NCBI GenBank assembly: GCA_003427395.1
Contig: BFEA01000014.1
Span: forward strand, 527,883-591,882
Direction: 5' to 3'
DNA length: 64,000 bases
DNA from: Chara braunii
Taxonomy: Eukaryota > Plantae > Charophyceae
Shown here: in pieces, positions 9,878 through 64,000 of the stretch
How positions within the stretch are numbered: the first letter of the stretch is position 1
How the letters are laid out: every line of letters starts with the position of its first letter
Made by a program: the position numbers and the translations under genes
The notes under the pieces: generated by a model
Seen by the model: the letters and a program-made list of their open reading frames with translations, nothing else
Database searches by the model: none
What the model was told of the DNA's origin: nothing

Positions 9878-9961
9878 CCTTGCCGCCTCCTTGAAATCTC
9901 CCCCTTCGCTACCTACCACCTCCTTCCCCTGGGGCAGAATCAAGATCCTCCGCTCACGTTC

Positions 9962-10240
9962 TCCTGGTCCCTGGTCCACTCTGGAATCCTCCTGGTCCCT
10001 GGTCCACTCTGGAATTCTCCTGGTCCCTGGTTCCACCTGCAATTCTCAGATCATACGGTTCCACTTGGGAATTGGCGGAGCTAAGGCNNNNNACTTGGGA
10101 ATTGGCGGAGCTAAGGCAGTCTGTCCCTGGCAAACTCTGGAATCCTCATGGTCCCTGGTCCACTCTGGAATTCTCCTGGTCCCTGGTCCCACTCTGCAAT
10201 TCTCAGATCATAAGGTTCCACTTGGGAATTGGCGTAGCTT
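9962..10240. repeat. Tandem ~28-bp repeat and duplicated block upstream of the CYP, spanning a small N gap
   Basis: tggtccctggtccactctggaat(c/t)ctcc repeated; block repeated on both sides of the N run. Confidence 0.7.
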
Positions 10241-13372: not shown

Positions 13373-13616
13373 TGGGAGATCTCAGTTCTGTCTATGTCCC
13401 CGCACTCAATTTTCCAGAAATCCCCGGCACACCCCATCTTTGCTGCCTTTCCCCGCCCCCCCGCCTTCCGCAACCCAAAACACTCCGACCGGAAAGCAGT
13501 GCAGGGCATGAGGTTGAGCGTCACAGGCACGCAACCAAAAAAAGAAAAAGAAAAAGAAAAAGAAAACAGGGAGCACAACCAAAAACAGTCCACCTGCCTG
13601 ACTGAACTGCAGTTCC

Positions 13617-13722
13617 GTCCTTTGGGACATCCGTTCAGATTGGAACGATACATAGATGATTAGCATGGCCCCTGTCCAAGGATGACACGCATTTAAATAA
13701 ATAAATAAATAAATAAAAAAAC
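13617..13722 (+). pseudogene. 3'-truncated U6 snRNA retrocopy with A-rich tail
   Basis: gtcctttgggacatccgttcagattggaacgatacatagatgattagcatggcccctgtccaaggatgacacgcat matches the 5' ~75 nt of plant U6; (TAAA)n tail; 10-bp TSD ctgcagttcc at 13607-13616 and 13723-13732. Confidence 0.9.
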
Positions 13723-19840: not shown

Positions 19841-21030
19841 GGCAACATGCATGCATGAAACATCGACCGTCAATTGCTGACCAAACAGCACAGCGATCGT
19901 TGATTGCTGGCAAAACGGAAGAACGACCGTCGATTGAAGACCAAAACACAACAAACGGTACGTGCAACGAGTCAAGGGCCAACATGCATGCATGCATGAA
20001 ACATCGACCGTCCATTGCTGACCAAAAAGAAGAAACGACCGTTAATTGCTGGCAAAACGGAAGAACGACCGTCCATTGTTAACGGAACAGAAAAACGACC
20101 GTCAATTGCTAATTGGTAGCCAAACAGAAGAACGACCGTTAATCGCTGACCACACAGAAGAAGAACGACCGTGAATTGCTGACCAAACAGAAAGACCGGC
20201 ACGTGCAACGAGCCACCAAAGAGAACGACCGGACCGGTACGAGCAACGGCTCATGTACAGATTTCATATGGTATGAAAAATCGCTATTATTGATTTAGAA
20301 AGAACACTTCTTTTAATTATTTGCGAAGAGCTGCTGAGCTTGTCATTTGATTGAGTACATAATTCGACCAAAATGGTCAGAAATCATTTGTAAATACTAA
20401 ATACTAATCCACGAAAAACAATCAAATAACTCAGAAAAAAATGGCAAAAGACACATGTCAAAGTTATATTAGTCAGCATCCCCGCATGAAACGTCGACAG
20501 TCAACAACGGCTGACCAAACAAAAGAACGACAGGCTGAAACTGTTGCTGACCAAACAGAAAAACGATCGTCAATTGCTCACCAAAAAAAAAAAAAAAAAA
20601 AAAAGAATAACGACCGGTCATTTGTGACCAATCAGAACGACCGGTACGTGCAACAGGTCAAGGCAACGTCATGGTGCATGCATCAAACAACGACCGTGTG
20701 TTGCTGAAACAAAAAAAAAAAAAGGACCGTCAATTTGCTCACCAAAAAAAACAGAAGAACGACCGGTCATTTCTGACCAAGCAGAACGACCGGTCATTTC
20801 TGACCAAGCAGAACGACCGGAACGTGCTACGGGTCAAGGGTCAATGCAACGTCACGGTGCATGCATCAAACAACCACCGCTGACCAAACAGAACAACGAC
20901 CGTCAAATTGAATTGCTTATCAAAACGAAGAACGACCGTCAAGTGCTGACCAATCAGAACGACCGGTCGGGCAACGGCTCAAGAGAAGTTCAACATGCAT
21001 GCACGAAAGATCGACCGTCCGTTACAGAGA
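19841..21030. repeat. Degenerate satellite-like array built on gaacgaccgtcaattgctgaccaaac
   Basis: Many aacgaccg-centred units in two blocks (19841-20250 and 20480-21030). Confidence 0.75.
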
Positions 21031-27607: not shown

Positions 27608-29130
27608 ATTTTTTTTTTTTTTTTTTTTTTAATGCGTAACTTCTCGTTAAAAAAACAGGTAAAATGAGGTCGGGGACCTCACAATTCAACCCGGAGTCAT
27701 CCTGGGAGCATTACCCAGTTTCGGTTACGAGCGCTTGCTCGAGAACCCTTGTACCAGTCTAAGGAGCCTGAGGAAACTCAAGGAACAATATTGACCAAAC
27801 TTAGGCCTCTTTCCTGCTACCTCGCTCCTGAAAAAAGGAAAATAAACGAAGTTTCAAGCTTACAAAACCACACAATCCAAAAGATAACCCTAATTAAAAC
27901 GAAAAAAATGACTTCAAGCCTAGAAAGCCTCACAACCAAGGAACTATCCTACCCACAACCACCCTACTACCTACTCATCTACCATTCCGTCTAAAACAAC
28001 AGGTGGTCCCCTCTGGGATTCATAAGCCTCACATGGTACTCCCGCCTCAACCTATGTTACCGCGCGTTCATTGAACGCGGGTTTTCCGTTCAGAAATTGA
28101 ACGGAATGAACGCGCGTTCAGTGAACGCGACCGAACGCGGAGTTCAATTCCGCACAGAAAAAAAAANNNNNNNNNNNNNNNNNNNNNNNNNNNNNNNNNN
28201 NNNNNNNNNNNNNNNNNNNNNNNNNNNNNNNNNNNNAAAAAAAAAAGGTTCTCTAAATATTCCGAAAAACAAATATGTTATGAAGAACAATAAAATAAAC
28301 AACTTTTCCCGGAGAATCACATCCAAATTCGCTATCAAATTCGAAATAAAAATAGAGAACAGAAAATAGAAAAAAGCAAAAAAAAAATTGAAATTAGTGG
28401 GCGAACATGATTTGACACCGCCATCTTTGGCGATTTTTCATTTTTTTGTCCGTTGGCAAAATTGACTCCAAAATTTACAGACATGTAGCCCACATTATAT
28501 AGAACTCAAAAAAAAAAATCAGAAAAAAAACAATATTTTTAGGCATCAAAAATAGTTTTTGAAAAAAAAAAATAAAAAAAAAATTGAACGCCGTTCAATT
28601 TTTTAACGCAAACGCGCAATCCGCGTTCAAACGCACATTTGAACGTGAACGCGCGTTCACCACGTTCAAACGGTTACATAGGCCTCTACACTCAGCCAAC
28701 CGCCATCCTCCTGCGGATTTAAAAGAACCGAGTGACCAAGGTTCATAAAATTATAAACCATTTGTCCCAGACTAACTTTCCTGCTTCCAATTTTACCAGC
28801 TTACCTTCTCTGCCCCAGGTATCTCCGCACAATTTTGACTCGCAGCCCTGGCTTTTTCTCATCCAGTCAACCTGAATAGTCCTTCTCAAGGATGTTTTAA
28901 ACATGCATCTGATCTCCTTGTTGTCGAATATTTGTAGGTTCCTTTCTTTCCAAATGACATCGCACCCAATCGCACGAACGACTTGGCAATGAACAATGTA
29001 GCCCCAACCTTCCTTTGGGTTCAGTGAGTTTGGGATTCCACCCAAAAGGACTCAATCATGGTTCCAGTCTAGGCAATTGTCAGTAAGGTTGGTCCGAAAA
29101 TTTTGCCACCAGTCCCAAATTCGTTTCGAG
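27608..29130 (-). mobile_element. L1-clade LINE 3' fragment interrupted by a hAT MITE
   Basis: ORF 28743-29045 contains an IWKERN..IF motif typical of the L1 ORF2 C-terminus; poly(T) on + at 27609-27630. Confidence 0.5.
28052..28681. mobile_element. hAT-type MITE with gaacgcg subterminal repeats
   Basis: TIR ctatgttaccg / cggttacatag; 8-bp TSD gcctcaac/gcctctac (7/8); relative at ~63612-63707. Confidence 0.75.
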
Positions 29131-32100
29131 GTTGGACAATACAAGAATTAGAATCTCAATTATTCTCTCGCACGGAGTATCGATGGCATGGTATGAGAAT
29201 TCGAGGAAGAATTGGGAAACATCACACAAAGGGGTCCATGGATGCAAGGTTTTTTGCTATGGCAAGAGCCCGTACTGGAAGAACGATCATTGAGGCTTTG
29301 GCCCATCCTCATAATCTGAATGGTCTTCTTGTCACCTCTACCGCTGAGTGCACTAAAATTACGAGGGATTTTTTTAAGGATCTTTTTCTTTATGAGAATA
29401 GTGATATTCCTTTGATTCAGCGTAGCATCGAGATAGACGAATTCTGCACTCCTTTGACTACTATGACTAGAGGTCTATCTGACGTCCAGAAGGAACAATT
29501 AGACTTGCCAGTAACTAAAGATGAAGTATGGACTGCTCTAATGCTTATGGAGGAAGAAAAGACTCATGGCATTGATGGTTTACCAAAAGAATATTGGGAG
29601 TCCATATGGGACTTCATCTCCCAAGATCTCATGAATTTCTATCAAGAAGTATGGATGTCGGGCCGGATGGGGGAATTTGTGGGTCAAGGTGTTTTGACAT
29701 TGTTATATAAGAAAGGAGACAAGTATAATATTAGGAACTATCGTCCCATTACTCTGTTAACAGTAGTATACAAGTTGATATCTAAGGTTCTTACTAATAG
29801 GCTGAGCAAGTATATTGCAGATATAGTTCACTCTTCCCAAACTGGGTTCATTCAAGGAAGGAATATCCAGGACAATATCCTGCTTGTTAATAAACTTATC
29901 AAGCTCTCTCGTCAGTCCAAGCATAATGCTGCCTTTATTTTCATTGACTTTGAAAAAACCTATAATCACATTGATTATTTTTTTCTAGATAAATGCTTAG
30001 AAAAAATCAATTTTTGTCCACTCTTTAGAAGATGGATTAGAATCTTGCATAGAAATACTACCACAAGGGTTATGATTCATGGTAATGTGGCACCTCCCCC
30101 CCCATTGTTATTCAAAGATCAGTGAGACAAGGTGACCATATTGCTCCGCTCCTCTTTGTGATCATCATGGAAGCTTTAGCAGTTAATTTAAGACATCACA
30201 AAGACATTAGTCGTATCCAGATTTCTTATATACTAGAGGAAGCTATCCCAGTATGCTCTCTCTTTGCACACGATCTCTCTCTAATGGTTGGGGCTTCACA
30301 AGCAAATTTAGATGCAATTAAGAGAATTATGGACACATTCTGCAGGCTTTTTGATATGAGGGTAAACTGGGGTAACAAAACTTTGGGCTGGTGGATTCAT
30401 TATTAAGGTGTGAGGCCCCCTGAGCATCCCAGATTAAATGGATGCAGACGGACGTACCAATTAGAGTACTAGGGGTTTCTCTTTTGACTACAGACAAAAC
30501 ATTAACCAATAATGAAGGAATTTTGCAATATGCCCATTCGAAATTAGAATTGTGGAAAGATAAACATATCTCCTTATTTGGGAGGTCTCTTGTAATTAAC
30601 AATGTGGTCTTGGTCTCCATTTGGTATAAAACTGCGTTATGGGCCCTAGATAAATTGACTCTCAAAATTTTTCAGCGTCAACTGGCAGTTTTTTTGTGGC
30701 GTGGGATCCATGAGCAGAAAAATGTCATCAGCAGAGCAGCATGGTTATCAATAATTCAACCTAAGTTTATGGATGGTCTTGGGATCATTGATCCTCAACC
30801 CAAGTTATAACACTTTCTCTTCAATGGATTAAACGTCTATTACTTAACCCCCTCACTCCTTGGAGCCCACTCGCCTGTGAGCAGATTAAGAGGTTAACAC
30901 CTCATACTCCAGCTGAGACAGACCCGCTTATGTCATTAGGAAATGGATCCTGGTCTCTTCGAAGGGGCAGTCCTGTGGATCTACATTGCCTGGATCTTTC
31001 AAATAGACAAGCAGCCAGGAGTGACCTCTTTAGAGATCTCTTTTGGAGCACATTGTTGAAAAATTGGAGGAAACTGCCTCTGTCAGATAAAATATCACCG
31101 GCGAGATGGGAAGAGGTTTGTCAACAACCCTTATTTAATAATACATTTATAAGAGATTCTCGAGGATGTGTTCTCCACTGTATGGAGACCCCTTGGCTTG
31201 GTTGGATTCAGAGAGGAATTATACGTATTAAGGATATTTAGAATCAAGAAACTCGAGATTGGTTCTCATCCTTAGACCTTCAGGAATGACTGCGCTATAG
31301 TCATCATCAGAGGATCGTTTTGGATAATATCATTGATTTAATTCCTTTGGACTGAGTTAGAATCTTAAGGAAAGAGCCTAAGTTTCTCCCTGGTGACTAG
31401 GTGGCAATTCACAGTCTTAAGGGGATAGTGGGGTATATAATTGAGACCCGTAATCCAGAGGATATTCTAATTTATATTCTTGATTTGCAAGAGGATGAAT
31501 TTCTTGTTCCCAAAACTCATAATGATACTAGGTGGTGTACGGCTGACCAGTTTTTCCGGGTTAGAGTATTAAAAGTCAATCATAAATGTCTCTCCTTTAA
31601 ACCAGAAATACCAATATATCATCTACCCTTTGACCCACTGAATTGGACCTGGTCTTGCCCACGTAAACAATGACGATCCTACTCTAGATCCTTACATACT
31701 TTATCTGTGAAGTCCACTTATAGAATGCTTCGCCCTAGGGTTAATCTTAGAGACCGCATTGAAGATCGTTGGATGAAGAATCTGAAGATCAACAAGGAAG
31801 AACTAAGAGGGGTTAAGTGGTTCCAAACGTGTAAAGGTAAGCCTGCTAAGGTAATTTCCTTGCAATGGCAAATAACTCACCGTTGTCTCCCTACTAATTA
31901 CTGGATTATTGACAGAACCTCATTAGAACATAAAGGTATCGCTCATCCATCATGATGGTGTAAGTTCTGTAGATCAGTTTTCTCATCCAAACTCTTTTCT
32001 AAAATAATTGAGCATATTTTCTCCAATGCCCAGGATCGGTCTAGCTTTGGCATTGGTGGGATAGGATTTGGAGTCAGTTGGGAACCACCCTCCCCTAGCC

Positions 32101-42339: not shown

Positions 42340-45210
42340 CCCTAATTATAGAAGGTGATTTTAACGCCACCCCCGAGAAGAGACTCGATAGGTGGAACCC
42401 CAGGAGTCCCTTGTTTTTGCCGCGAGTGAAGACGAGAAAACGATAGTTGAACTTTGTGAGACCCTCTCATTCTTCAATACCTTCCGCCGACTGCACCTTC
42501 AAGCCAGGTCTTTCACATGCATAAGGGACAGTGACCCGGCGCGGTTATCCAAATCTCGAATCGATCTGATTTTTCTTTCAAATGACCAAGAAAGCGCCTT
42601 GCGCTGGTCACTAATCCTCCCACGTAGCTCGTATCCAGGGCTAGACCACAAGACTTGCGGGATCATACTGACAATGAGGAAACGACCTGATCAAGGGCCC
42701 AGAATCTACAAGTTTAACACTTCTCTACTCAACGACATATCCTTCCAACAAATAATTCGGCATGAATGACTCTTTTGGCGTCAACAAAAACATATTTTCG
42801 ACTCACACTCCGCATGGTTTAATAATGGTCTGATTTTTCTGGCCAGGAAGTGCAAGGAATTCTCTAAAAGCTAAGGCGGCGATACGACAACAACATGAAA
42901 TGTCCATACACAAAGAATTGATAGCCCTGGAATGTCAGGCAGAGTCACAGCATCTCACCTCCTCCATACAAAGAATACAAAGAATTAAAGACCAACTCCT
43001 ACAATACGCACTACACAGATGGCAAGGAATTAGAATACGAGGGAAAATGGTCAGATTCACCTAGGAGGTCACGATCGATACCCACTTTTTCTCAATCGCC
43101 ACAGCACAAGCACGACGGACTGTTATTGAAGCACTGTTTGACCTAAATGATGAGAATATCATAGCCACCCACACCGCCCACAACACACTTATCACGAGAA
43201 AATTCTTTAAACAGTTATATACCTCTCAAATCTCACCCTCACAAGAGAAAGGGAGAGAAAAAGCATTAGAAGAATTCCTGGTGCCAATGGACGGACACCT
43301 TTCCCCACACCAGCGAGATAAACTAAAGGAACCAATGACCAAGGACGAAGTGTGGTCTGCACTCCTCCAAATGAAAGAGGAAAAAACCTCAGGCATTGAT
43401 GGATTTCCTAAGGAATTCTGGGAAGTAATGTGGACTGACTTAAGTGGGGATTTATGGGACTATTACCAAGAGGTATGGGAAGCTGGGGAAATGGGAGAAA
43501 CAGTAGGAAAGGGCATACTGACACTACTATACAAAAAATGGGACAAAATGAATATAAAAAATTATAGACCCATCACGCTCTTTACAGTGGTTTACAAAAT
43601 GCTTTCGAAAGCGCTAACAAATCGCATGGCGGCTGTCTTGGAAGATATCATACATCCGGCCCAAACAGGGTTCATAGCCAGCAGGAACATACAGGAAAAT
43701 ATCCTGTTGGTTAACGACGTGGTCCAATTGGCACAAAGAAATCGGTCAAATGCAGCGATTATATTTATTGACTTTGAGAAGGCCTATGATCACGTCAATT
43801 GGAACTTTTTAGACAAATGTTTAGAAAAAATGAACTTTGGTCCCGTTTTCCGGCGTTGGGTGAGAATTCTCCACGAAAATGCTACCACCTGCATGCAAGT
43901 CAATGGTTCGGTGGCACCCCCATTTGAACTTCAGCGGTCAGTGAGACGAAGGGATCCCATTGCCCCCTATCTCTTCTTGGTCATAATGGAGGCATTGTCG
44001 GTCAACCTGAGACACAATAAAGAACTTACATGGATCAAGATTACTGATATCCTAGAGGAGGCAATTCCTATCTGTTATCTTTTTGCAGACGACCTCATTA
44101 TAATGGTGGAAGCAACGGACTCCAACATGAAAGAAATCTATAATCTTATGAGCCGTTTCTGCAAAATGTCGAACATGACCGTCAACCTGGGACAAAAGAC
44201 CATAGTATGGTGGTTACACCACCAAGGGGGAAGGCCACCCGAAAGCCCGCGAGTCACCTGACTCCCCCCTGAAGAGCCTCTTAGGATTTTTGGGGCCCTA
44301 GTTACGGCTAAGGGTGAACCAGTGACCAATGATAAGTGGCTGACACGACCGACACAGGCCAAACTTCAAACTTGGAACAACAAACACACCTCCATTTTTG
44401 GGCGGGCTCTGATAATTAAGGATGTAGTACTCGCTACACTCTGGTATAAGGCCATTCTATGGTCCATGAGCAATGGAGGGTTCAAAACATTGAAGCAGCA
44501 GTTGGCGGTCTTTCTGTGGAGAGGGGATAGTAACAGCCCGCACGCCATCAGCCGAGTAGCATGGGAATCGGTGATTCAGCCTAAGGTCATAGGAGGGTTG
44601 GGGATTGTGGACCCGGCCACACAGTTCCAGGCCCTCACGGTTCGCTGGCTCCAACACATTATCTTCTCATCAACCTCTTCATGGGTCCCCGTAGCCCTAG
44701 CGCAAATTGCAGCCCTGGCCCCATAAGTTCCGCCTCAAATCGACCCCCTGGTATGGCTCGAAGACAGATATTGGAAGCTACCTAGGAAATATCGGAATGG
44801 GGATCCCACAGATAAACAATGGTTGCACCTCCTGCGTACATGGAGGAAGTTCCCCCGCCCCGACCGACAGACACCAGACAGATGAGAGGAGATCTTCAGA
44901 CAACCCTTGTTCGAAAATCGACTTATTACAGACTCACTGGGCTACGTGAGGTGTAGTTCGGATTCCCCATGGAAGGGTTGGGTGAAACACGGGGTCCGGA
45001 GGGTAGGGGACCTTTGGGACACGGAGGCAAGGCGGTGGAAAAACACAGATTGTGAAAGAATGCAAACATGGCTGCGGTACTTTCACTTCACAGAACCAGC
45101 CCTGGAAGAACTCATCGAAAGCTTCCCCCTTCATTGGTACATCACCCTCCGAAAAGGCCCTTGCCTAAAAGAAGGGGACTGGGTAGGACTGCCCAAACAT
45201 GATAAGCAAG
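42340..45210 (+). mobile_element. Decayed L1-clade LINE (APE C-terminal part and RT), 3' end cut by a SINE-like element
   Basis: IIEGDFN, SRIDLIFL and LDHK (APE); GIDGFPKEFW, NYRPITL, DFEKAYD and LFADDL (RT). Confidence 0.92.
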
Positions 45211-49274: not shown

Positions 49275-51199
49275 AAAAAACAAAAGGGGAATCGACCCAG
49301 TCTGGGACCCAAATCGCCCGCCCACACCCATATCGCCCGCCACTAGTTTGCAACGGGAAAAAACTCTACCCCTCAAAAGGGAAACAATGGACGGCGCCCT
49401 ATACTAAATTGCAATGACCTTGACAAGCTAACCTGCCCTATGACCGGTCTTAGGGACGACTGCGACCGGACCCTATTTTCTGCTGTCGGAGACCCCAAAC
49501 GAACCCGTCCTAGCGAAGTTGTATTGCACGACCTTACCGAAAATAGAAAGAAATGAAACGACGAAAATGAAACCCATACAAGCGCAGCCTCGTGGCTGCG
49601 AACAAAAAAGCAAACCTGTTCCCCACATAGTGGCCAGATACATTCGTCAAAGGCCTTTGCAACTTAGACCCCCCCGTGAGGGCCTTCCCCAACATCCCTG
49701 GATTTGAAATTTTCGTTTTTTTTCTTATTTTTTCTTCTCTTTTTTTTCTTTTTTATTTTGTCGGCCTCCAACCTTGCCCCAAGCCCCGTGTTTTAAGGAG
49801 TAGGCTACTAGATGGACTTTGCATTTGCCTGTGAAGGTAGTGGTGGTTTAAAGGCTCCTTGGTCTAATGTAGAGAATCCCTGGGGCTCGGACCGACTAGA
49901 ACCGATTTACGCCTGTGCTCTTTGGTTTTCGACCACGTGTGGCCGTCCATGACAAACTTCAATCGTTGATCGTTTTCCCAACTTTTTCGTAACGACTGCT
50001 AGTGTCGATTGTCTTCCTTTTCGTGGAGGTAGCTGTCCATCAGCCAGTTGAAAATTTTTAAATTTATTTGTAGACCATTTAGTTGACCACTTTACGTTTG
50101 CAGGAAGCTTCAGTTCTATGGTTTTTCTAGGGGGGGGTGTTTTTGAAGTTTCGCGCCGTGATTTTTTTATGTGCAGAAATAGAGAATATTGAGATTTTCG
50201 TGTGCACTAACAGTTAAACGCGTCGTGGCAGACGGTGTCATTGTAGGCCAGTTGGTTTCCTTGCCTTTTCTCCGGCGCTAAGGCTTGAGAATGAGGGATA
50301 CACAGGCTGTATTGTCATGATGTCGATGTCAGACTTATTTTTTATTTTTATTTTTTTGTCCTTTTTTTTTTTAGCTTCATCTATTGGTGGGGAGCTGCAC
50401 CTGCTTGAAACCGGGTCCAACGTCCCTTGAGTACATGAATGATATGAATGATTTGAATGATATGAATGATATGAATGATATGAATGATATGAATAACCAC
50501 AAAGTTGGGCAGAGATGTGCCTCTTCACTCCATTGGGGTGCAAAATCAAACCAACATCAGCCTAGCACTATTCTCTTCTTATCAACCAAACAGCGATTTC
50601 GTCAAAACGGATATTTTATATTTTTTTAACGAAATTGAAATTGTTATTTTCATGCTGATTTTGGTGATTTTTTACATTTTGAGCACACCATTTTGGGTAG
50701 GTGCCGCGCATTTGTTTATAGTTTGTGCTCATATTAACCACAAGTTTTACATTGCTTTCTCACACATTTTGGGGGGTGTTACAATTTCATTCGCATTATG
50801 TGATGCTAGATGGGTCTTTATGATGGGTTTTATTGTACTCTTCTATCATATCAATGAACATTTACTATGTTTCGTAAAATAATATCAGTTGTTTTTCGTT
50901 TTTTATTGACAAATGCATTAAGACAAGATAAATATATTGAATATCATACTGAAAAATACATATGGCATGTCCAGTCAATGACAAAAAAAATTCATGGACA
51001 TCTAAAAAAGTTCGAGACATTTTGTTCCATCCTAGAATTACGAACAAAGTTATGTGAAAAATTTTTGAAATCCATATAAAAAAAAAATTTGGCTTCTTTA
51101 GACAAATACAAAGAAACATTGATGCGGAGTTTGGCTCATGTGACATATGATACATGTGCGCTGAAATATATGTACATAGAGAGACTTCATGTCTCTCTC

Positions 51200-51246
<47 letters not shown>

Positions 51247-51252
51247 ATCTAT

Positions 51253-51284
<32 letters not shown>

Positions 51285-51530
51285 TTATCTATCTATCTAT
51301 CTTTCTCTCAATCTTTGACTAGGATAATGTCTATGAAAGTTGTTGCCCTATACTTCATACACTCCTCTACACTACGAATATGTGCAGTCGTACATGATTG
51401 TACAAAAGGTGGAAATTCGCTTCGACATCATTTTCAAAAAACTAAAATCCGGCACATGACCGCACGTAAAACAATATGAGCACTCGTACAAGCGCATGAT
51501 CTACTCTATTGCCATCTCCGTTTACATGTG

Positions 51531-52221
51531 CTAAGGCACAAAATGTCTAGAAGTGCTACAGCAGCGCAAGTGAACCAGGTCGTTGCTCAGACCGTTGGCT
51601 CGGCGGAGTACACTCTTCGTAATGTTGAAGTTGGTGGTTAACTTGATTTTTTTTAATTTGCGGTTGACCCCCGTTATTTCTTCATTCTCTACGATGACTG
51701 TGGAGATAGAAGCAGTGATTGCAGTCCTTCGAGCAACGAATTCCAACATTGCATCCCGTGTGTGAATACAATATTGTTTAACGTGCTGCTTGTACGCTCG
51801 CACCATCGAGTCTCCTGCATCACTCTGCGGGATCTTTCGTCTCCATGTCTTCGTTGCACATATTGTAAGCCCTTCGTGATATTGCACAGCAACACATGCA
51901 ATGGTAGCGCTGCATTTCTCTGTCACCGGGGCAGTCACAAGGCCGTAACCGTAGAAGACCTCCTTGTATCTTGCGTTCCCGTCGTTCTTGTAATTATTAT
52001 TATTCTGACAGTCACACACCCCCACGAGGTTATAAATCTTTCTTCTTGCGCTTCGAGGATACAAGTGCAGTGACGGTTCGTAATATGCAAAATCCTACGT
52101 GACAAGTCCGATGGCGTTACGTTGTCTCCTCAGCCGGTCTGATATCAGTTCCCTCCATTTGATTGGTGTTCCCCACCAATCTTGTCTTAACTGCCTCTGC
52201 ATCCATTTCAGGTCCATACTG
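51531..52221 (-). CDS. Small, probably spliced gene of unknown function inside the TIR element (weak GNAT-like hints)
   Basis: 177-aa ORF 51531-52064 plus a putative upstream exon 52121-52221 (polypyrimidine-CAG acceptor, GTAACG donor) with compatible phase. Confidence 0.4.
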
Positions 52222-52321
52222 CATGAGAAAAAAAAAAAAAAAAACGGGAGAAAACAAAAACATAGGCATCTCTAACACAAACGAAGTACGGAACTGTGAC
52301 TGTGAGTTCACGAGTCATTGT

Positions 52322-53345
52322 GGAACGCCCGACCCCCGCTCAACGACAGCAGGGCATCCGTGGGTCCGACGTTTTCAGAACGCCCGACCCCCACCCTCTT
52401 AGCACCGCGGGGGTCCGGCGTTCTGAAAACGCCCTACCTCCGCCCTCTTAGCACCGCAGGGGTCCTGCGTCCCGAGAACGCCCGACCCCCGACCTTCGTT
52501 TTTCGATAGGGGGACAGGGGGTTCCCAAAATGCCGGACCCCCCTTTCAGATGCGAGGGCCTCGTGTTGCGCGTTCCATGAACGCCCGACCCCCTTTCGGA
52601 AACAACGGTCGGGGGTCGGGCGTTCTGGGAACGCCGGACCCCTTCCGGAAACGACGGTCGGGGGTCGGGCGTTCTAGGAACGCCGGACCCCCCTTCCCGA
52701 GACGTCGGGGGTCGGGAGTTATGAGAACGCCGGATCCCCTTTCGGAAACGAGGGTCGGGGTGTCCGTCATTGGAGGGAACGCCGGAAGCCTTTTGGGAAA
52801 TGACGGTCGGGGGTCGGGCGTTCTCGGAACGCCGGACCCCGTTTCGGATACCTCGGGGGTTGGGCGTTCTGGGAACGCCGGGCCCCCTTTCAGACACATG
52901 AGAAGGCTGCCAGGCGTCTAGGGAACATCGGGCCCCTTTTCTGAAACGACAGACGGGGGTCGGGCGTCTAGGGAGCGCCGGACCCCCTTTCGGATACGTC
53001 TGGGGTCGGGCGTTTTGGGAACGTCGGACCCCCTTTCGGATACGTCTGGGGTCGGGCGTTCTGGGAACGCCGGACCCACTTTCGAATACGTCGGGGGTCG
53101 GGCGTTCTGGGAACGCCGGACCCCCTTTCAGAAACGAGGGTTGGGGTGTCTGTCGTCTAGGGAACGCCGGACACCTTTTGTGAAACGACGGTCGGGGGTC
53201 AGGCGTTCTGGGTACACCGGACCTCCTTCCAGAAACGACGGTGGGGAGACGAGGGTCTGGGAATCGGCCGTTTTCGATATGCCGGACCCCCTCGGTGCAC
53301 GGAGGGTGGGAGTTCGGGCGTTTCAGAACATCCGACCCCCGCGGT
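52322..53345. repeat. Array of ~20 palindromic units (ggggtcgggcgttc-NNN-gaacgccggacccc), period ~46-50 bp
   Basis: Read directly; each unit is an imperfect 14-bp-stem inverted repeat. Confidence 0.92.
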
Positions 53346-53499
53346 TGTGGAGATGGGGGCCTGCCATTTGGAGAAGGGCGGATACGCGATTTTTGACGAC
53401 GCGAGGGGGGGCCGTCGGCTCCTCGCGCGAATTGCTTTTGTTTGTTCCTCATGTTTTCTTTGCTTCAAGTTGTGCGTTTCCTTTGTTTGTGCCCTCTAG

Positions 53500-56400
53500 G
53501 TCAACCTGCTGCTTCGACCTCTCGGGCATACGGCAGGTCAAAGATCTACAACAACAAACCATTGGCTCTGGACTGGGATGGTGGTCTGCATAAGCTTGGA
53601 TGTGGGGCCGTTGTCTTTTTGAGCGACGACAATGGTGCGACATGGTACTGTTGTGGGGGTGTTGAGAAATCTGAGAGCGCCAAGAACACCTACGACGGGA
53701 GGCCGTTCAGGACCTTCTTTCTTACGTCAGTTTTCGACAAGGACGGGAAAAATTGGGTCAAGGAAGACAAGAAGGTCGGCCTTGACTTGCGGCTCTTTCA
53801 AGGCTATGGCGTCAAGGCTTTCTCCATGAAAGCGTTTGACGCGCGCGGGGACGGCGCCGAGCTTCGCATGCTCACTACGGAACAATTCCTCAGTAGAACG
53901 AATGGCTACCGCATCACTGGCTGCCTTCCTGTCGTCGACAGTTCCTTGGAGCTCACCAAGCCGTTGGTGAAATTCAGCAGCCCGGCGGACCAACTTCCAG
54001 GTGTTGTTAAGGAGTACAGGGAAGCCTTCTTGAGGCTGCCTCTGGACCAGCAAGCTGACTGCGCTTTTGTGCCCTTTGTCACGAGCTCGAGGAGATCGCG
54101 ATATACGCCATCCGCACCGGTTGGGAAGAGGAAACAGTTGGCTGCTTGTCTAGCTCCGCCTTTGCCAGGCGCGTCGCCCTCGCCCTTGCCCACGGTGAGG
54201 GGAGGTCACGATCTCGCTCAATGTTCCAGTGAGGCTACGGAGTACGATGACAGACTTTTGTACGGACGCAATGTTGCGCGCGACAGTGTCCAGGAAGGTG
54301 CGACTGCCCTGATTGAGCAAAACAAGGATGAAGAAGATGGGGGAAGTTGCGGTTCACGTGAAGACGGCGGTGATTACGAGTACATGGACGTTGGGGATGA
54401 GAACATGCAGGACCAGAACATGCTTGGCGATGACGACGTCGGTATCACGTCGGAGCATGGCCCTTGCGATATCCCCGCCGGTTCTGTGGGGCCGGCTGTT
54501 GGCCGGCACTTGTCGTCCCCTGCGATATGCCATTCGCAAGGCGAGAGTCAGGGTGGGCATGACTCGCAGGAGCACGGAGGATCGAAGTCGAGGAAAACGA
54601 CAAGAGAAACTTTTCCTTCTGCTTCCGCTCACAAGAGACAATCGAGGACTGACGCAGTAAATGAGGCTCGTGGAGCTCTGATAGCATCCCAGGAGGCGAG
54701 ACCTCCACGGAAGAGCAGCCAGGGGGGAAGATCTGGCGGTCGTGGCAGCGGCCGTGGTGGGGCAAGAAAAGGTAAGCAGATAGTGAGGGCAGAAGAACTG
54801 CGGGACTCGGGAGATGAGGGCGAGGGAGTGGGCCCTCGCATGCCCGACGATGGTGATGAACCGCTTCAGCACGCTGCACCCATCGACACGACGCGTTGTT
54901 TCTTCCTCGAGTATGACGAGCGGGGTTTTGCTAAGCAAAAAGTCCTCCCTGTTCTTGTGGACATCATGAAAATCAAACGCATTCCCCGCGGGAATATTCT
55001 TTTCAACCATCGCTCTTTGTCTGCGAATATTGTGCGAGGCATCGAGAATGCCATCGAGAGTTCCATCACCACGGAACCGGGGGCGTGGGATAGGCCTGAG
55101 CTCGTGCTTGCGCCGGTTGACCGCAACGAAATCGTCGGCGGGAAGGGAAGGCGGATAACACCGACCGAATTCTTCGAAAGAGACTCCTCGGAGTTCGATT
55201 GGTATACTGTCTGCGGTCAGCATACGGTCGAGGCGATGAAGACATTCGTAAAAAAAGGTTCTCCGGCAGTCGATGTCTATGGCCTTCGCGCGTACTCTAA
55301 GGTGCGGGTCGTCTATTTTGGAGATGACCAAACGCAAGGGCATTTCAATGTCTCCGCCTTCAACAACACGCGCGAAAATAGGGCCATGATGTTGTCGTTC
55401 GAGGATGCTCTCCGTGATATGAGGCAATGGTGGATCGATAACCACCGAAGCGAGGCCCTGAAAGGCAAGGTCAGCGATAAGGATGCAGTCGCCGTTGCGC
55501 ACCAAAAGAAGTGGCAAAATTTCTTAAGGGCCTCCATGGGGAAGGCATGCGACAAGGCGTTCGTAAAGCAAGCGCTCGAGAATGAGTACAGTAAGGATTG
55601 GAGCAATAAACTCCGTGGCTACATGAACCTCGCCACATTCACCGAGGTTGTATGGCCACTGGTCGAGAAGTTCTTCGACATGTTCAACGAGGGGAAGCTG
55701 CCAGTTGGCGATGGTAAAATACCGCTTGACATGCCGGGTAGGATGGAGGGGCGCCAGCCAGGCCCGTACACCGACGAGACGAAGGGGCAAAGGACATTAT
55801 ACCATTGCATTTACGCGAGAGATGGTCCCAAAGGCTCCATCGTGTCGTGGAAGGATCTCTGTCCTTCCTACTTCAAAAATTTTGGGGATTTGACGTGCCG
55901 CGAGAGGGAAGTTGCACTGCTCCTACTCATGAAAGGGAAGGTGGTCGCGACGAACGTCAAGGTCATGCCTCCGAGAGTGAATACGGAGTGCCTCCTTGAC
56001 ATCATGCGCAAGGAACGCTACATGGTCCGTATGTTCAACTACGTTGTTTTCCGCGCCGAGGGAAGGGCGGACGATGAATGGAATGATGCCTTCTTCATGT
56101 CATACAAGGACCTTGAAGACAGGTATGGGCCGAACGGTCTATGTGCAGCTGAATGGGAGAAGGAACGGGACAAGCTGCATGTCAGCAAAGTGAAGACGGT
56201 CCCTCGACGACTTGGAGGGGTGGAGGAGGCAAGGCAAGGATCAGGCTTGGGCCCTACAGCGGCAATGTATAAGGAGGCTCCGTTCCACTTTAAGGTGTTT
56301 GTATACACCTCAATCGATAAGCTCGATCTGCTTCGAGCGAAGGTCAAACGGGTCGCCTCCAGCGCACGTCATATCGTGTGGGATAAACTTAAAAAACAAA

Positions 56401-58562
56401 CAACATTGTTGCCGGTGTGCATGTCATTGAAGGAAGTGCTGGCTGCGCCGGACGACATCGTCACTGCGGCGCAAAAAGTGACTTGCAGGGCCGTCATCCT
56501 TGACATCTCCCCCGCTAACTTCTGCGCGACATGGACCTCTTAAGAGTTCGACGCTCTGCACTCTATGATGACTAAGTGTTGTGGCGTTAATTGGGTTCTT
56601 TTTGTCTTCGCACCGCAGAAGGTGCAAAGTGATGTTCTGCGTTGCTTATTCCGGTGGGAGGACAACGAACTCATCCTCGGGACCTGGAAACGGGATGACA
56701 GGCCATCGAATGACATCACGAGGTATGGCAATATCGCTACGGCGGGTCGAGACATGATGGTCATTGTCTTGCACGCGGAGGGAGGGGATCTCAGAAAGGT
56801 CACGGTCGCACCCCACCTTGTTAATGACCTCACAAACGTGAATGTCGTGGAGGAGAAGTTCGGGAAGTGTCTGGGGAAACACGGTGGCATAGATGGCGAT
56901 GAAAGTGTGGTGTATTCCATCTGGGAGCGAGAGCTTGGCAAGTTGCGTTCCTTGTGCGGGTCATTCGTCGGGGAGGCGGAAGGTGTGCTTTTATTGGGTA
57001 GGGCGCACGCGGGTCTTGTGTGGGAATTCTTACTGGCAGGGAATAATGTCATTGCCTGTGACGAGTCGGCAAAGGACATTGCATACTTGACAAAGTTCAT
57101 CGATATACTTGTCAAGGACGACAGATTCAAGTGCCACGTCGAGAAACCGCGTTGCAAACATCGCCCGAACTGGGACATGTTCCACAAGTTGGGGCCTAAG
57201 AGACTGAAGATGTGGGAGTACCTGTTCCGCGATATGCCACAAGGACAGCTTGACGGAAAATATATGTACAGGAAAGCAAAGGCAACAGAGACCCTCAAAC
57301 ATTATCACGGTGCTCTCACTGGCGTCTTTGAGACTTTTGTTGCTCGATGCGAGATCCTCAAGTTCGATCGTCGCAAAGACAAATTGACATCCAAGGACTA
57401 CGCGGAGCTCGCGAAATCGGGCGATGGCTTTAACCCCGTCGACAGTGAGGAAGATTCTTCAGACTCCGACCTCGAACTGGGCGAGGACACATGTGGTGGA
57501 ATGGTGCAAGCCCACGATGACGGAACTGTCCATTCGCACGGAGGGTCCATCCCGGTGGCCGCCCCAAGCGTCGCCTCAATGGTGGCCCCGTCAGAGACTG
57601 CTGCATTGCAAGACGTTGGAAGATGCGGTGGCAATGAAGAAGACGACATTGAGATACCAGGCGAGGCGTCGACACTCGCACCAGGCGATGCAATTCCTCC
57701 AGGCTACTGTGCTGACCCAGACACGATATATTTCCTGGAGGGCAAACACACCCACACAGGCGAGGATCAGTGGGGCCATGACATCATATGGCATGAGGGC
57801 GTTTTACAGCCGTGCATCCAAGATGGGGAGTGGAAGATGGCGGTGAAATACACAAGCGGTTGAAAGACTTTTCGCCGGATGTCAAAGGACATCTGGTTGA
57901 AAACGACGGAACTCGCGATCCTGCATCGCGTGCGCGTCGAGAATCCAGGGCAGAGCGAGGCCGCCATCAAAGCCAAGGCCGAAGAATTGTTTCATGTCTT
58001 GCGCGACAATCGGCAACTGGAGTACAGCAACAAATTTTATGCCCTGCCCTCGAGTCCCTCATGCGGGTTAATCAACTGGAAGGTTGATCAAACCGCCAGA
58101 ACCTTGGAGGGGAGCTGCTCTCATGATTTCATGCCTTCGGCTGAGCCGGCCTCTGTGGCCGCGCAAGCAGGGCACAGGGGAGATGACGGGGCTACTGTTG
58201 TCGGGCCTCAAGAGGTTGACATCACGTATAAGCCGCAAATATCGAAAAAATTCATCTCGGTCGCCGCGACACAATCGTCCTCACCCATCGATGTGTCAAC
58301 GATGTTGCCGCCAGATGCAGGTGCCACGTACGGGAGTTTATTGATAACAAATGCTGCAATGCAAGGCAGATCCGAGATCGAGTCAGAGTCTTATGTTGGG
58401 CCGAGCGTGGCAGAGAGTCCATCTTTATGCACTGGCAAAGGTGATGCACAATCACCGCTGACACCACAGGGAGGGGCCGGTGGGGATGGCGGGAAGGGAG
58501 GGGATGTGGAGGGAATGCACCGTTCTCGCAACCTCGACACCTTAACCGCTGATATTGATTAA
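53500..58562 (+). pseudogene. ~1,690-codon gene with ParB-like domain, helical region and degenerate amino-methyltransferase-like domain; two premature stops
   Basis: ORFs 53442-56543, 56565-57863 and 57879-58562 share one frame, with single stops TAA at 56541 and TGA at 57861; ELVLAPV...WYTVCGQHTVEAM; AVILDISP...ERELGKLRSLCGSFVGEAEGVLLL...GNNVIACDE; splice acceptor ending 53499. Confidence 0.7.
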
Positions 58563-58856
58563 AAGGGTGAGGGTGGGTGAGGCGGGAGGGGTGCAATTGG
58601 AGGGGGAGAATCCAGTGATATGATTACAACTTCACCTCTGCCTTGTTGAACGAAATTGTGTAATTGACTTGGTTCGTTGTTTTGTTTAAAACAGAATTCG
58701 TATTAGTCTCCGTAGGCACCACTTCTACGTCGTTTTTCCATTTATGTATNTTTTTTTTTTCANCTCAAATTTTTAATAGACCTGAGATGTTTAGATTGAC
58801 TGNCCGTNTCGACGTGCAGTAACAAATCGTGGTGGGAGCGTATGTGTGGTATTGTA

Positions 58857-58931
<75 letters not shown>

Positions 58932-59050
58932 GACATGGACGTGTGTGTGCGGACGTACTATATAAGGGTGGTCGATCGATGCGAGGAATGAAAGGACGAA
59001 AGATGTGAATGACGTTCATACAAGTAAAATATTAGAGAAATAATGAAAAC

Positions 59051-59992
59051 ATGCCTTGCATGCCTCAGCTCTCACAAAGCGTTTGGCCATGCACTCACAA
59101 TACTTGCCTCGTCCGCCCGCGTGAATGTCCTCTTCCTCATCGTCTGTGGTGTGCAGTACAAATGACAACAACGGATACAAGATTGTGCAAAAGAGGATGG
59201 ACAATGCATCTCGCAACTTCGTCTTTATCGGAGAGGGAGATGGCAGCACTAGCGCATATCATTCGCGAATACGGGAATAGGTATCCCGTTGCCAACACAC
59301 AAGATGCGCACAATAACGAAGTGTTGCAACTCACTCGCAACGATTTCCTTTTACTCGTCGTCGAACAACAGTGGTTAAACGACAACATGATCAACTTTTA
59401 TCTCAACCTCGTAGCATTAGACAACTGTTGTAGAATACAGCACGTAGAATGCGACGCAGATAATGAGATAGTCATTAGAGAAGGAAACGGTCGCATTCCC
59501 AAAGTATCAGTGCTGAGCTCGTTTTTTTTTGTCAAACTTTTCGATAATGACATGAGATATAGAGGCCGAGAAGTAGAACGCTGGTACCAGAATGTAATTA
59601 TAAGTGACATGGATTTTATTATTGCTCCTTTCCATATCGCACACCAGGACCACTGGACCTTGGTCGTGGCTGATTTGAAGAAGAGGAAATTCGAATTCTA
59701 CGACCCTCTCGACCCCGACAAGGAGTTCGCGTTAAAAGTGACCGGCGGGTTTGCAAAGTTTTTATTCGAAAGATCAAAATCGCAAGGCAAAGAGGTGGAC
59801 ACGAGACCATTCAATCACATATGGAATGTAGAGGGCATTCCAAAGCAACATGACACGAACGAATGTGGGGTCTTTGTACTCACGTACGCGTCACTTTTGG
59901 CACGGGGCCAACTTCCGCCTTTCTGTTTCACCGCAGATGACATACCCGCGATACATCGTCGGATGGCATTGGACACAGTGACTCGTGAGTAG
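59051..59992 (+). CDS. Ulp1/SENP-family (peptidase C48) SUMO/ubiquitin-like protease
   Basis: WLNDNMINFYL, SSFFFVKL, HWTLVV (His), FYDPL (Asp), PKQHDTNECGVFV (Gln/Cys); catalytic residues intact; TATATAA near 58959; exact start uncertain. Confidence 0.93.
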   Translation: MPCMPQLSQSVWPCTHNTCLVRPRECPLPHRLWCAVQMTTTDTRLCKRGWTMHLATSSLSEREMAALAHIIREYGNRYPVANTQDAHNNEVLQLTRNDFLLLVVEQQWLNDNMINFYLNLVALDNCCRIQHVECDADNEIVIREGNGRIPKVSVLSSFFFVKLFDNDMRYRGREVERWYQNVIISDMDFIIAPFHIAHQDHWTLVVADLKKRKFEFYDPLDPDKEFALKVTGGFAKFLFERSKSQGKEVDTRPFNHIWNVEGIPKQHDTNECGVFVLTYASLLARGQLPPFCFTADDIPAIHRRMALDTVTRE

Positions 59993-60128
59993 TGTGTACG
60001 TGATATTATATAGTATAATTGCGAAGGGGTCGTACGTGGTTGGCATGAGATGGCGCTTGACAAAAAACAATGTATATAAGGTGCTAATTATTCCTCGATG
60101 CACTGTGTCACTTGCCCCTTGCATGGTA

Positions 60129-60238
60129 CCTTACACCTTACACCTTACCCCATACACCTTACACCTTACCCCTTACACCTTACCCCTTACACCTTACCCC
60201 TTACACCTTACCCCTTATACCTTACCCCTTACCCCTCA
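60129..60238. repeat. Telomere-like heptamer tract (CCTTACA/CCTTACC)n
   Basis: ~15 heptamer units, ending ~45 bp inside the right TIR. Confidence 0.9.
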
Positions 60239-60350
60239 CACCAAAACACCCATTTGTAATGGTTTTTGCACTTCAATCATCTAAAAAATGACAATTTCAA
60301 TTTCGTTCAAAAAATATAAAATGTCCGTTTTGACGAAATCGCCGTTACCA

Positions 60351-63012
60351 ATCTTTATTAAGAGAACATATAGGAATATAATTGTTTCCACTCATTCAAC
60401 TAGACACACTTTTTTCAAGTCATTCAACTAGTCATTTCTGTAATGCAATGTATGAGGTTCTTTGACCTCTCCTACAACATCCCCATTAGGTAATATTCTT
60501 TCTGCCCATTTACGGATCTGTTTGGGTGAAGCTAGTCCAATTTGAAGAAACTGAGATTCATTCATACCCAAACCAAGCCCTTGCAACCATACTCGGCGTC
60601 GAGGGAGGAAAGGGGTCTGGAAAATCCGATAGTGGTCGTAAAGGAATTGTTGGGTCGACCATAGTGTAGTCATTAAAAGCAAGACTATAATCCCGACTTT
60701 GTTCCTCCTCTTCACCTGTCCTTGCCCGGGTTGCCCCTTCCCATTTAACCTTCCTCATCTTTCTCCCATGGGTTCCTCCTAGCCAGCATTGGTTGAATCG
60801 TTGAATGTGTTGAAGGATTTATTTTCGCAAGGATATAAATTGTATTTTTTCCTTACACTGCTCTCATTTTATAATGATGTCAGTTTGTATTTGTTGTTTA
60901 ACTGTGTCATCGAATTCCGGTACATTTAACCGAACTCCCTTCATTTCATACGTACATTTTTTTAACTATATGGCCCATAATACCGCTCTCCTACCCATGC
61001 TGTACAATTTTTGTGAGAATTCATCAATAGAATCAGGGGACCATGTTTCAAGAAGAAGGGTTTCCCATTCCCATGACGACTGGATTTCTGCTTCCATATT
61101 ACATCAAATATTGTCCCACCACCTCCAGAGCCAAATAGCCCCAGGACATTGCAGGAATACCTGATCGATTGTCTCAAGAATTAACTTAGATGAAAACACA
61201 AACCTACAAAATTTACACGAGAAAATTGTTTTTCCCCTTTGTTCCAATGTCGACCTGTCTATAAGCCAATCATTTGTAGGTAGGCACATATGCTCTATTT
61301 GCCATTGTAGTAAAGCCACTTTTGCAGCTTTAATTTTGGTCTTACTAAACCATTTTACCTTTCTTAATGATTCTTTATTAACATTAAGATGCTTCATTCA
61401 TCTTTCCTCTTCCTTGTCTTGTACAATAATCTTAGGGCGAAGCATCCTATAAGTGGATTTCATGGATAACGTGTGAAGAGCACAATAATACATTTTTCAT
61501 TTCCTTCTTGTATTAGACCACTTCCAATTAGCAGGATCAAGGGTCGGATGACTCATGGGTGTATTAGATTTAAAGGCTATCCATTTATCTTTGTGTCTCA
61601 ATACTCTAATCCTGAATACCTGATCTTTTGTCACCCTCCTTATACTATTTTGGTCCTTAATTATAATCATGTGAGTATTATCCATTTCATAGGTAGTGAG
61701 GGGGGTCTCCCCATTCTTCAAAACTACAACAATACTACATAAGATATTTGAATGATCTTTCATAGCAACCCAATCACTTCTAATAACTGAGGTCTCTTTT
61801 TTAGAATCTTTACTTAATCCAAAGACATCCAAGTCAATCAAATTTCTAAAACTTTCTCACAATAATGACAATAACTAAGGTGGGTTTGTAACTGTGAATG
61901 AGTAATCTATTCTTTTTTTTCACTGTTCTAGATGTCCTTTATCCTAACAATATCAATTTTAACCCACCCTTTCATGGGGGAATTTGCACAATGAATGACA
62001 CATCCTTTAGAATCTTTGAGAATGCAATTATCAAAGAGTAGTTGTTGACATACCTTTTCCCATCTCTCAGGAGGGTTTCGGTCTATTAATGGCAATCTCC
62101 TCCATGTTTTGATGAGGTTGGGCCAAAACGAATCATTACGTAAATTCATTATTGTCGTCCTCCTATCTGATACACATTGATCCAACGGTTCGTTCACTAC
62201 TCCTCTTTGAGGGCGCCAAGACCTATTTTATAGCCACATCATAAAGCCTATGTTGTCATATGTCATCGGGGCAAAACGTCTGATCTGCTCTCATGCCAAC
62301 ACACTCCAAGGGGTCTGGGGATTAAAGAGTAGGTGTTTAATCCATTGAATTGATAAGGCCATAGTTTGTGAAAAATGATCAATGATGTTCAACCCTCCTC
62401 TAACCTTAGGTTGTATCACTGATTGTCACGCTACCCTGCTAATTACCTTATCGAGCTCGTGATTTCCTCTCCATAAAAAGGTTGATAGTTGACGTTGCAA
62501 GGTCTTTACCACTTTCTTATCTAGCGTCGATAATGCTGATTTATAGCGGATCCAGGCTAAAACCACGTTTTAATCACCAGAATACAACTAAAGAGAGAAG
62601 TTTGCTTACACTTTCAAAGTTTCAGCTTAGCATATGCCTGTTTGGCTATACATTCATTGTTAGTTGATGGTTTTCATGCCCGTGAAATGGAGATACCCAA
62701 TACCCTAATGGGAGTATCCAAGGAAAGTCATTTCACTTGGGGAAGTTTCGGGGGGGCTTACTCCTTGATGATGAATCTACCATCCCATCGTCTTATTACC
62801 CCAGTTCACCCTCATATCAGACAGTCTACAAAATTTATCCATCAGACTGCTTATTGCTTCTAAACTCATTTCAGATGCTTCTACCATCAGGGACAGATCA
62901 TCAACAAAGAGAGAGCAAATAGAAATGGCTTCCTTTGGAATAGATGACACTTGAATTCTTTTAATATCCTTATGTTGTCTGAGGTCAGCTGCTAAGGCCT
63001 CCATGATTATAA
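60351..63012 (-). mobile_element. 5'-truncated decayed L1-clade LINE, same family as the 29-32 kb and 42-45 kb copies
   Basis: IIMEALA, CSLFVDDL, MRVNWGNKT, CLPTN...CKFC...ETIDQVFLQC; AATAAA on the minus strand near 60354-60359. Confidence 0.9.
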
Positions 63013-64000
63013 CAAAAAGAAAGGGGGTGTTTTCAAAAAAGAAAAGAACGCCACACACCGTTTACACGATGCTCGTCGGTCCGGGGCCCTGGCCTCAAAA
63101 AATCTTTGATGGAAATGAAAATCTGAATTTTGAGCGGGGGGCAAGGGGGGGGGGGAAGGGGGGGGGGGGGGGGGCTGAAACAAAAAGGGCGATTGCTCTC
63201 CACCTCCTTCGAAGAGTCTGTTGTAAAAAGTATCTTGACCCAACCGGCTTACAGTCTTCACTCGAATAAAACGCACCGTCATTATAGTCGTATTTTTCCA
63301 GCTTTCAGTCTACATAAAGACATAATGACCGGGCGTTCGATTCGGGTGAGGCCCTAGTTCAATTCGAGCAAGTTTTTACCGTCTTCACCCGAATAAAATA
63401 CGCCCGGTTACTATGGTCATATGTCGACAGAAAGTTAGACAAAATACGACTATAATGACCGGGCGTTCTATTCGGGGTGAAGACGGTTACACAATTGCAC
63501 ACAGCTAGACTGTTGAAATACAGACTCGAGTTGAATCTCCACTGGGGCGAGGTCCCACTAGCAAACAGGATTGGATTGAACGCCTGAATCTGGACGCGTT
63601 TGTGGAAAGGTGTTGTGTTACCACGCATTCATTGAACGTGCGTTTCGCGTTCCAAAAATGAACGCGGTGAACGCGCGTTCACTGAACGCGCCTGAACGTG
63701 TTTTACGNNNNNNNNNNNNNNNNNNNNNNNNNNNNNNNNNNNNNNNNNNNNNNNNNNNNNNNNNNNNNNNNNNNNNNNNNNNNNNNNNNNNAGTGTGTGT
63801 GAATTTGTGTGTTTGTGTGTGTGTGAACGTGTGTGTGTGTGTGTGAAAGTTCCTTCTTTTTTTTTCGGGGGGGTGGGGGAATCTCCCCCGCTCAGACGGC
63901 CCATACAGGCTATCTGAAGGGTCCTCGCAGCCTTGTCGCACAGACCCCCCCACCCACCAACGTCAAGGCAGGCAGTGAATATGGAGTGGAGCACGAGCTG

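Follow-up and report, generated by a model that had tools for sequence, protein, structure and literature searches.

What is an element that carries a ParB- and methyltransferase-like gene, a SUMO-type protease gene and an array of palindromes between inverted repeats, and has no transposase to move them? This question is raised by positions 50589-60346 of a stretch of 64,000 nucleotides from Chara braunii (assembly GCA_003427395.1, contig BFEA01000014.1, positions 527,883 to 591,882), hereafter the window. Comparison with 12 loci fetched for the family indicates that the window copy is very probably an internally deleted, decaying derivative of an approximately 18-20 kb Sola1-type DDD transposon. 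The role of its cargo is a separate matter, for which several readings are weighed below.

The left terminal inverted repeat (TIR; 50589-50650, plus strand) starts with AAC and the right TIR (60285-60346, minus strand) finishes with GTT; the two agree at 58 of 62 positions, and a matching left end is present in sister copies L004, L007 and L041. Comparison of both flanks places an ACCA target-site duplication (TSD) at 50585-50588 and 60347-60350, and shifting the element boundaries yields nothing better, so the 62-bp repeats and 4-bp duplication of the original prediction hold. Inside these ends, tblastn found no transposase, in keeping with the lack of any recognised transposase motif at first reading, and the copy is thus not autonomous. 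Since its large and small genes carry premature stops (two and one, respectively), it is also decaying. A non-autonomous cut-and-paste element with a 4-bp TSD therefore stands as proposed, while the suggestion of a helper element is undone by these stops. No empty insertion site was found among the fetched loci. Taken alone, the window copy is nothing unusual, a dead element of the kind left by internal deletion.

The extent of the deletion is given by a parent-type copy, L041 (BFEA01000145.1). Window positions 50589-52326 align to L041 13110-11395 at 94% identity, and positions 52324-55281 align to L041 2967-79 at 92% (95-97% in coding parts). Between the matched blocks, L041 holds 8,428 bases (1,719 of them N) that are missing from the window copy. 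Because these additional 8.4 kb lie exactly at 52324-52326, the window copy is read as a Ds-like internal deletion, with the loss of a small gene (ORF-B), the Sola1 transposase and further palindrome arrays. At the junction, 3-5 nt of microhomology link sequence upstream of a second small gene, ORF-A, with a palindrome's right half-site. Internal deletion derivatives of the Ac/Ds type likewise keep ends and cargo, have lost the transposase and show short junction microhomology; nothing essential differs. Sola2-Fanzor elements without transposase are comparable derivatives in which ends and cargo are retained (PMC3627910). The description of the family as transposase-less is accordingly true of this deletion copy only, the longer L041 and L004 copies both carrying the gene. 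Another candidate explanation, an old separate lineage with a break at 52222, was overturned by the L041 alignment. Separately, a Nextera mate-pair junction adapter (two back-to-back Tn5 mosaic ends) lies beside a gap at L041:3200-3240, an assembly artefact in the public Chara assembly.

The transposase itself was found in sister copies L003, L004, L007, L008 and L041, and matches DUF7869 (E 5e-33, 7e-24 and 9e-59). Its motifs are CxxC, DGMDQ, DNCGGQNKNRFI and GHTHTD, with counterparts in Sola1-1_AP (DNCGGQNRNRFI and GHT; PMC3985635) and in Sola1-1_Ec32 (DGANQ and QVDN). From this motif-by-motif comparison, made by eye without profile score or tree, the family transposase is assigned to the Sola1-type DDD group. 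Alongside DDD core motifs, the family has 4-bp TSDs and TIRs with the AAC ends known for algal Sola1. The AWWT target preference of insect Sola1 is not seen (ACCA, CCTT, CAAA, CTAC), and does not define the clade, as Sola1-1_Ec32 departs from AWWT too. Searches of viral and prokaryotic collections returned no relatives of the transposase. A beta-rich segment at its C-terminus (L003:1182-1700 and L008:10900-11380) resembles a Tudor/BAH-type barrel by eye and has no Pfam match.

In papers that relay Bao et al. 2009, the Sola1 superfamily is described as having DDD core motifs, 4-bp TSDs, MITEs (miniature inverted-repeat transposable elements) and deletion derivatives, with some members >15 kb (PMC10741241, PMC3845634, PMC3985635). 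The Chara family shares core motifs, TSD length, MITEs, deletion derivatives and size, and differs in its heavy cargo and in TSDs that are not the AWWT of insect Sola1. The closest published counterpart is the giant Sola1-1_Ec32 of Ectocarpus, a 21.5-kb element with AAC...GTT ends and a 4-bp TSD. Its transposase shows CxxC and DG-x-x-Q / Q-x-DN motifs, and a gene combining ParB-like and N4C/N6A-methyltransferase parts lies on the other strand (PMC12477816). Giant size, ends, TSD, transposase motifs and a ParB-methyltransferase gene are common to both, the accessory proteins being compared by description, so this architecture has already been published (PMC12477816). The Chara family differs in TIRs of 55-62 bp as opposed to 282 bp, in a methyltransferase that lacks PPY throughout, and in possessing Ulp1, ORF-A and ORF-B, extra N- and C-terminal domains and subfamily-specific arrays. 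To what was known, the Chara family adds catalytic motifs lost throughout its members, Ulp1, ORF-A and ORF-B, and palindromes particular to each subfamily. No paper on the Chara family was found.

Members of this family recur as a unit. A word search with the large protein returned 87 homologues, all from Chara braunii and one of them the window locus, while a profile search gave 205 clusters at 50% identity; among ten distant clusters checked, nine were from C. braunii and one from a Joint Genome Institute (JGI) metagenome. In each of the 11 loci, the window included, where the large gene is seen and the 3' end has been sequenced, Ulp1 and then an AAC-type TIR close the element. Their flanks differ each time, and subfamilies at 73%, 37%, 25% and 23% protein identity are among them. 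Five pairs of ends could be compared (ACCA/ACCA, CCTT/CCTT, CAAA/CAAA, CTAC/GTAC and AAAT/GAAC), three of which come from MITEs 280-330 bp long that share these ends. Three of the five duplications are perfect, which is expected by chance at ~6e-7, while one matches at 3/4 and one at 2/4 positions. Independent TIR halves without a steady TSD or cargo, which would have spoken against a family, were not what the fetched loci contained, and the family is therefore considered real. In metagenomes, the TIR pattern gave 29 single, unpaired matches without cargo, which are judged to be chance; one of them, on the human-gut metagenome contig L030, was set aside.

The full layout is represented by L004, a gapped 20.5-kb copy that runs from left TIR through ORF-A, ORF-B, transposase, arrays, large gene and Ulp1 to right TIR, with ORF-A, ORF-B and transposase all on the minus strand. 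Other arrangements were also observed. L040:3500-18011 holds two tandem members: at 7556 the copy of the 73% subfamily gives way directly to the large gene of the 37% subfamily copy, within its 5' part, probably a nested insertion. The large gene at L002:14000-20339 is split by a 6.3-kb insertion. In a sister family with the opposite end layout (L008:11380-15147), transposase, palindrome array, an unrelated orphan ORF and TIR follow one another; this ORF (12681-13499) has neither a Pfam nor a PHROG match. L009, a 7.7-kb JGI contig (3300064063), contains an open 1,419-aa homologue (25%), an open Ulp1 frame and an AAC-type right TIR. This environmental contig probably derives from another stonewort and is a good source of intact natural protein.

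What, then, does the cargo encode? The large gene of the window copy (53442-58562, plus strand) is a frame of 1,706 codons with stops at 56541 and 57861. The ParB-like and methyltransferase-like domains predicted for it were recovered, the former tentatively, whereas the open frame of ~1,690 codons was not. Its true start probably lies in an upstream exon, with an acceptor-like site ending at 53499. The gene pieces were searched one by one rather than as a joined spliced model, and Pfam, PHROGs and PDB sequence searches gave no match to the large protein. An AlphaFold model of an 857-residue core, built with 96 sequences, has a predicted local distance difference test score (pLDDT) of 84. Core residues 488-755 resemble beta-class amino-methyltransferases (Z 18.2 for CcrM, 17.1 for PvuII and 15.9 for rotifer N4CMT; RsrI by Foldseek, E 6e-7) and show the permuted Rossmann fold of beta-class N4C/N6A DNA methyltransferases. 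In the window, this domain occupies 56343-57146 and contains the stop at 56541. Core residues 4-171 gave weak Z scores of 5.1-6.5 against five ParB/Srx-fold proteins; in VIA, this ParB-like region scored 6.5 for PadC, 6.4 for KorB, 5.9 for SerK and 5.6 for plasmid ParB, values that are weak and form a consistent set. The domain (54891-55394) bears N-x-R, GQH and N-x-R/E motifs, with GQH in place of the GERR arginines of the cytidine triphosphate (CTP) clamp, and no ParA partner was seen. A conserved C-terminal domain (57714-58061), present in 115 homologues, is cut here by the stop at 57861.

The nearest predicted structures in Atlas and BFVD are phage fusions of ParB_N and N6_N4_Mtase. Such fusions, known from ParB-terminase loci (PMC4738411), share domain order and folds with the large protein; they are 400-500 aa long with catalytic motifs, whereas the Chara protein has a 310-aa helical insert between the domains and has lost these motifs. 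Catalytic PPY/F/W was present in 0/52 aligned rows and FxGxG was absent, so the methyltransferase-fold domain is most likely a pseudo-enzyme. Nevertheless, it is under purifying selection. Between subfamilies, the ratio of non-synonymous to synonymous rates (dN/dS) stands at 0.47 in the low-complexity tail and falls to 0.17 in the pseudo-methyltransferase, 0.16 in the C-terminal domain and 0.21 in Ulp1. For close copies, the values obtained were 0.21 (N-terminal domain), 0.28 (ParB) and 0.34 (ORF-A). The retention of this cargo under selection after loss of the catalytic motifs argues that DNA binding, and not methyl writing, is selected.

Downstream, the Ulp1 (C48) SUMO-type protease frame (59051-59992, plus strand; PF02902, E 2e-22) is open, as predicted, and has the His-Asp-Gln-Cys set of C48 proteases (H 59651, D 59702, Q 59846, C 59864). 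An acceptor-like site ending at 59156 precedes the Ulp1 core, and several gene models in distant subfamilies join Ulp1 to the large protein; the large gene may thus include Ulp1 as one of its exons. The small minus-strand gene, ORF-A (51531-52217; ~228 codons, with a splice-acceptor-like tract before it), is present as predicted, although interrupted by a stop at 52097. It is an orphan without homologues in a homologue search, and its paralogue ORF-B (27% identity, E 7e-21) was lost from the window copy. Neither protein matched Pfam, PHROGs or PDB in sequence searches; ORF-B scored under 0.8 in Atlas, and the ORF-A model has a pLDDT of 44, at which fold matches are meaningless.

Between ORF-A and the large gene lies the palindrome array (52322-53345), with the core GGCGTTC-N3-GAACGCC (7-3-7) at a period of 46-50 bp. 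Twenty units at ~48-bp spacing were counted, matching the number first estimated, and unit 1, a chimeric half-unit, arose through the deletion. The array folds far better than shuffled sequences (z = -6.7). Its CpG observed/expected ratio is 1.11, compared with ~0.7 in the flanks, but this richness does not demonstrate protection, because the element's genes are not CpG-depleted either. Other subfamilies have other cores, GCGTTTG-A-CAAACGC in L008 and GGCGGAT-AT-ATCCGCC in L039 (the 23% subfamily), and each of the three cores contains CpG and is located in non-coding DNA.

Family-specific tandem motifs in non-coding DNA, here three cores in three subfamilies, are also a feature of Arabidopsis VANDAL/VANC and Kaonashi (KIU) Mutator-like elements (MULEs), where anti-silencing has been demonstrated for VANC (PMC5735166, PMC13317346). 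An accessory protein and a Ulp1 domain are shared as well. VANDAL and Kaonashi elements differ in being MULEs with a 9-bp TSD and no TIRs, in their unrelated protein, and in motifs that are not spaced palindromes; no Pfam match to MULE transposase or VANC was found in the Chara family.

Cut-and-paste transposition by DDE enzymes with a 4-bp stagger is well established, as is the mobility of deletion derivatives in trans. In the mechanism proposed here, the transposase would cut at the AAC ends and insert with a 4-bp stagger. The window copy would have lost 8.4 kb through microhomology-mediated repair at a hairpin-prone palindrome, in the manner of Ds-like aborted gap repair, and would be mobile only if transposase were supplied in trans. 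The large protein, of putative phage ParB-methyltransferase ancestry, would bind the palindromes of its own subfamily non-catalytically and bring the SUMO protease to them. Divergent promoters between arrays would then stay open against host silencing, as with VANC/KIU in VANDAL elements. By this analogy, the large protein and SUMO protease at cognate palindromes could plausibly counter host silencing as a VANDAL-like form of self-protection, although we stop short of calling this probable. A more specific proposal, and a distinctly speculative one, is that charophyte Sola1 elements converted a phage ParB-methyltransferase into a catalytically dead, sequence-specific reader of the palindromes that they themselves bear, with a SUMO protease carried or recruited by this reader. 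This would be a second and independently built sequence-specific anti-silencing system in which protein and palindrome change together between subfamilies.

Several observations weigh against this account. No full-length open transposase gene was found among the family copies. The palindrome type of L008 could not be linked to its own large gene, and it is from gene models and acceptor-like sites that Ulp1 is taken to be fused with the large protein. No splice reads were seen, the mapped N-free stretch omitting the large-gene/Ulp1 and deletion junctions. Expression is also scarce, with 21 and 95 poly(A) reads over the large gene in two runs, all copies included. As these reads are few, show 90-99% likeness for the most part and run largely in one direction, transcription of other copies is at best very low. 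Finally, two MITEs 280-330 bp long that share the family's ends have retained one full palindrome unit each, each like a different subfamily core, and a role in transposition would explain this just as well.

This last point favours an alternative that we consider somewhat unlikely, in which the palindromes are cis-acting transposition sites (where transposase loads, or where a ParB-like clamp chooses targets or helps to bring together ends separated by 20 kb), with the cargo serving as a cofactor of transposition. Bacterial clamps of the ParB type do work on spaced palindromes. However, the arrays lie kilobases from the ends, between divergent genes, the GERR arginines are missing, some MITEs (L008 16772-17067) have no such unit, and the number of MITEs is very small. 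MITE types with AAC ends were observed at L001:16075-16355, L008:16772-17067 and 20210-20538, and L004:34472; two of these AAC-end MITEs are fold-backs with a palindrome unit ~95 bp from the end.

Returning to the deleted copy, it might instead belong to an amplified non-autonomous subfamily whose cargo was kept under selection after transposase loss. Changes private to the window copy since its split from L041 are rich in synonymous sites in the 5' half (17/37 vs 28% expected, p 0.015), as such a history would predict. This excess may be older than the deletion or reflect CpG decay, however, and private changes in the 3' half look neutral (14/44 synonymous, p 0.34). Together with the three premature stops and a junction seen in no other fetched locus (only four show that part of the left arm), this makes an amplified subfamily unlikely.

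Catalytic activity of the methyltransferase-fold domain, which would make it a non-canonical enzyme writing N4-methylcytosine (4mC) or N6-methyladenine (6mA) on its own element, is less plausible still. The fold is complete, and it keeps the motif-IV Asp (96%), the acidic residue after strand 2 (~95%) and one motif I Gly (90%); such activity has been proposed for Sola1-1_Ec32 (PMC12477816). Against this, the known mechanism requires the aromatic residue and prolines (PMC4738411) that are missing from every aligned row, and FxGxG is absent.

An assembly mis-join at a repeat array is highly improbable as the source of the window copy: the junction does adjoin the array, and arrays are frequently gapped in this assembly, but it is free of N (the four single N letters in the element all lie away from it), the shared 3-5 nt are far under assembler word sizes, and the sequence to its left is unique. 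Kinship with Chapaev/Transib (CMC-type) elements, originally surmised from the likeness of AAC and CAC ends, can hardly be credited, for although Chapaev likewise has a 4-bp TSD, the transposase motifs are those of Sola1, no DUF1280, Transposase_21 or RAG1 match was found, and the ends are AAC, not CAC, as already on record for Sola1-1_Ec32. By the same domains and ends, the family is no CACTA element either.

The remaining features of the element are repeats. (TCTA)n and (TC)n microsatellites occupy 51192-51314 in the left arm and 58859-58927 between the large gene and Ulp1. The tract near the right end that had been called telomere-like (60128-60242) is a subterminal 7-bp CCTTAC-type repeat present in every close copy, and contains 0 plant telomere units (CCCTAAA). 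In the left flank, a short dispersed repeat (50374-50436) followed by (ATGAATGAT)n recurs in most fetched Chara loci and is likely a retroelement 3' end. Elsewhere, the window contains a cytochrome P450 frame (7664-10042, minus strand; PF00067, E 7e-87), a U6 small nuclear RNA copy (13612-13716, plus strand; Rfam 74 bits), reverse transcriptase fragments (29103-30125 and 43281-44261, plus strand), a related pair of segments in inverted orientation (30152-30423 and 62748-63019), and a MITE-like sequence of 579 bp (4140-4718) whose inverted ends measure 75 bp and enclose a palindromic, AT-rich centre of 300 bp.

In summary, giant Sola1 elements of algae that carry a ParB-methyltransferase gene, a published and still provisional class, are extended to the sister group of land plants. 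One genome that holds several subfamilies, each with palindromes of another type, offers a direct swap test of protein-motif specificity. The same subfamilies could also test why many transposon superfamilies carry Ulp1, a question that dates from Kaonashi.

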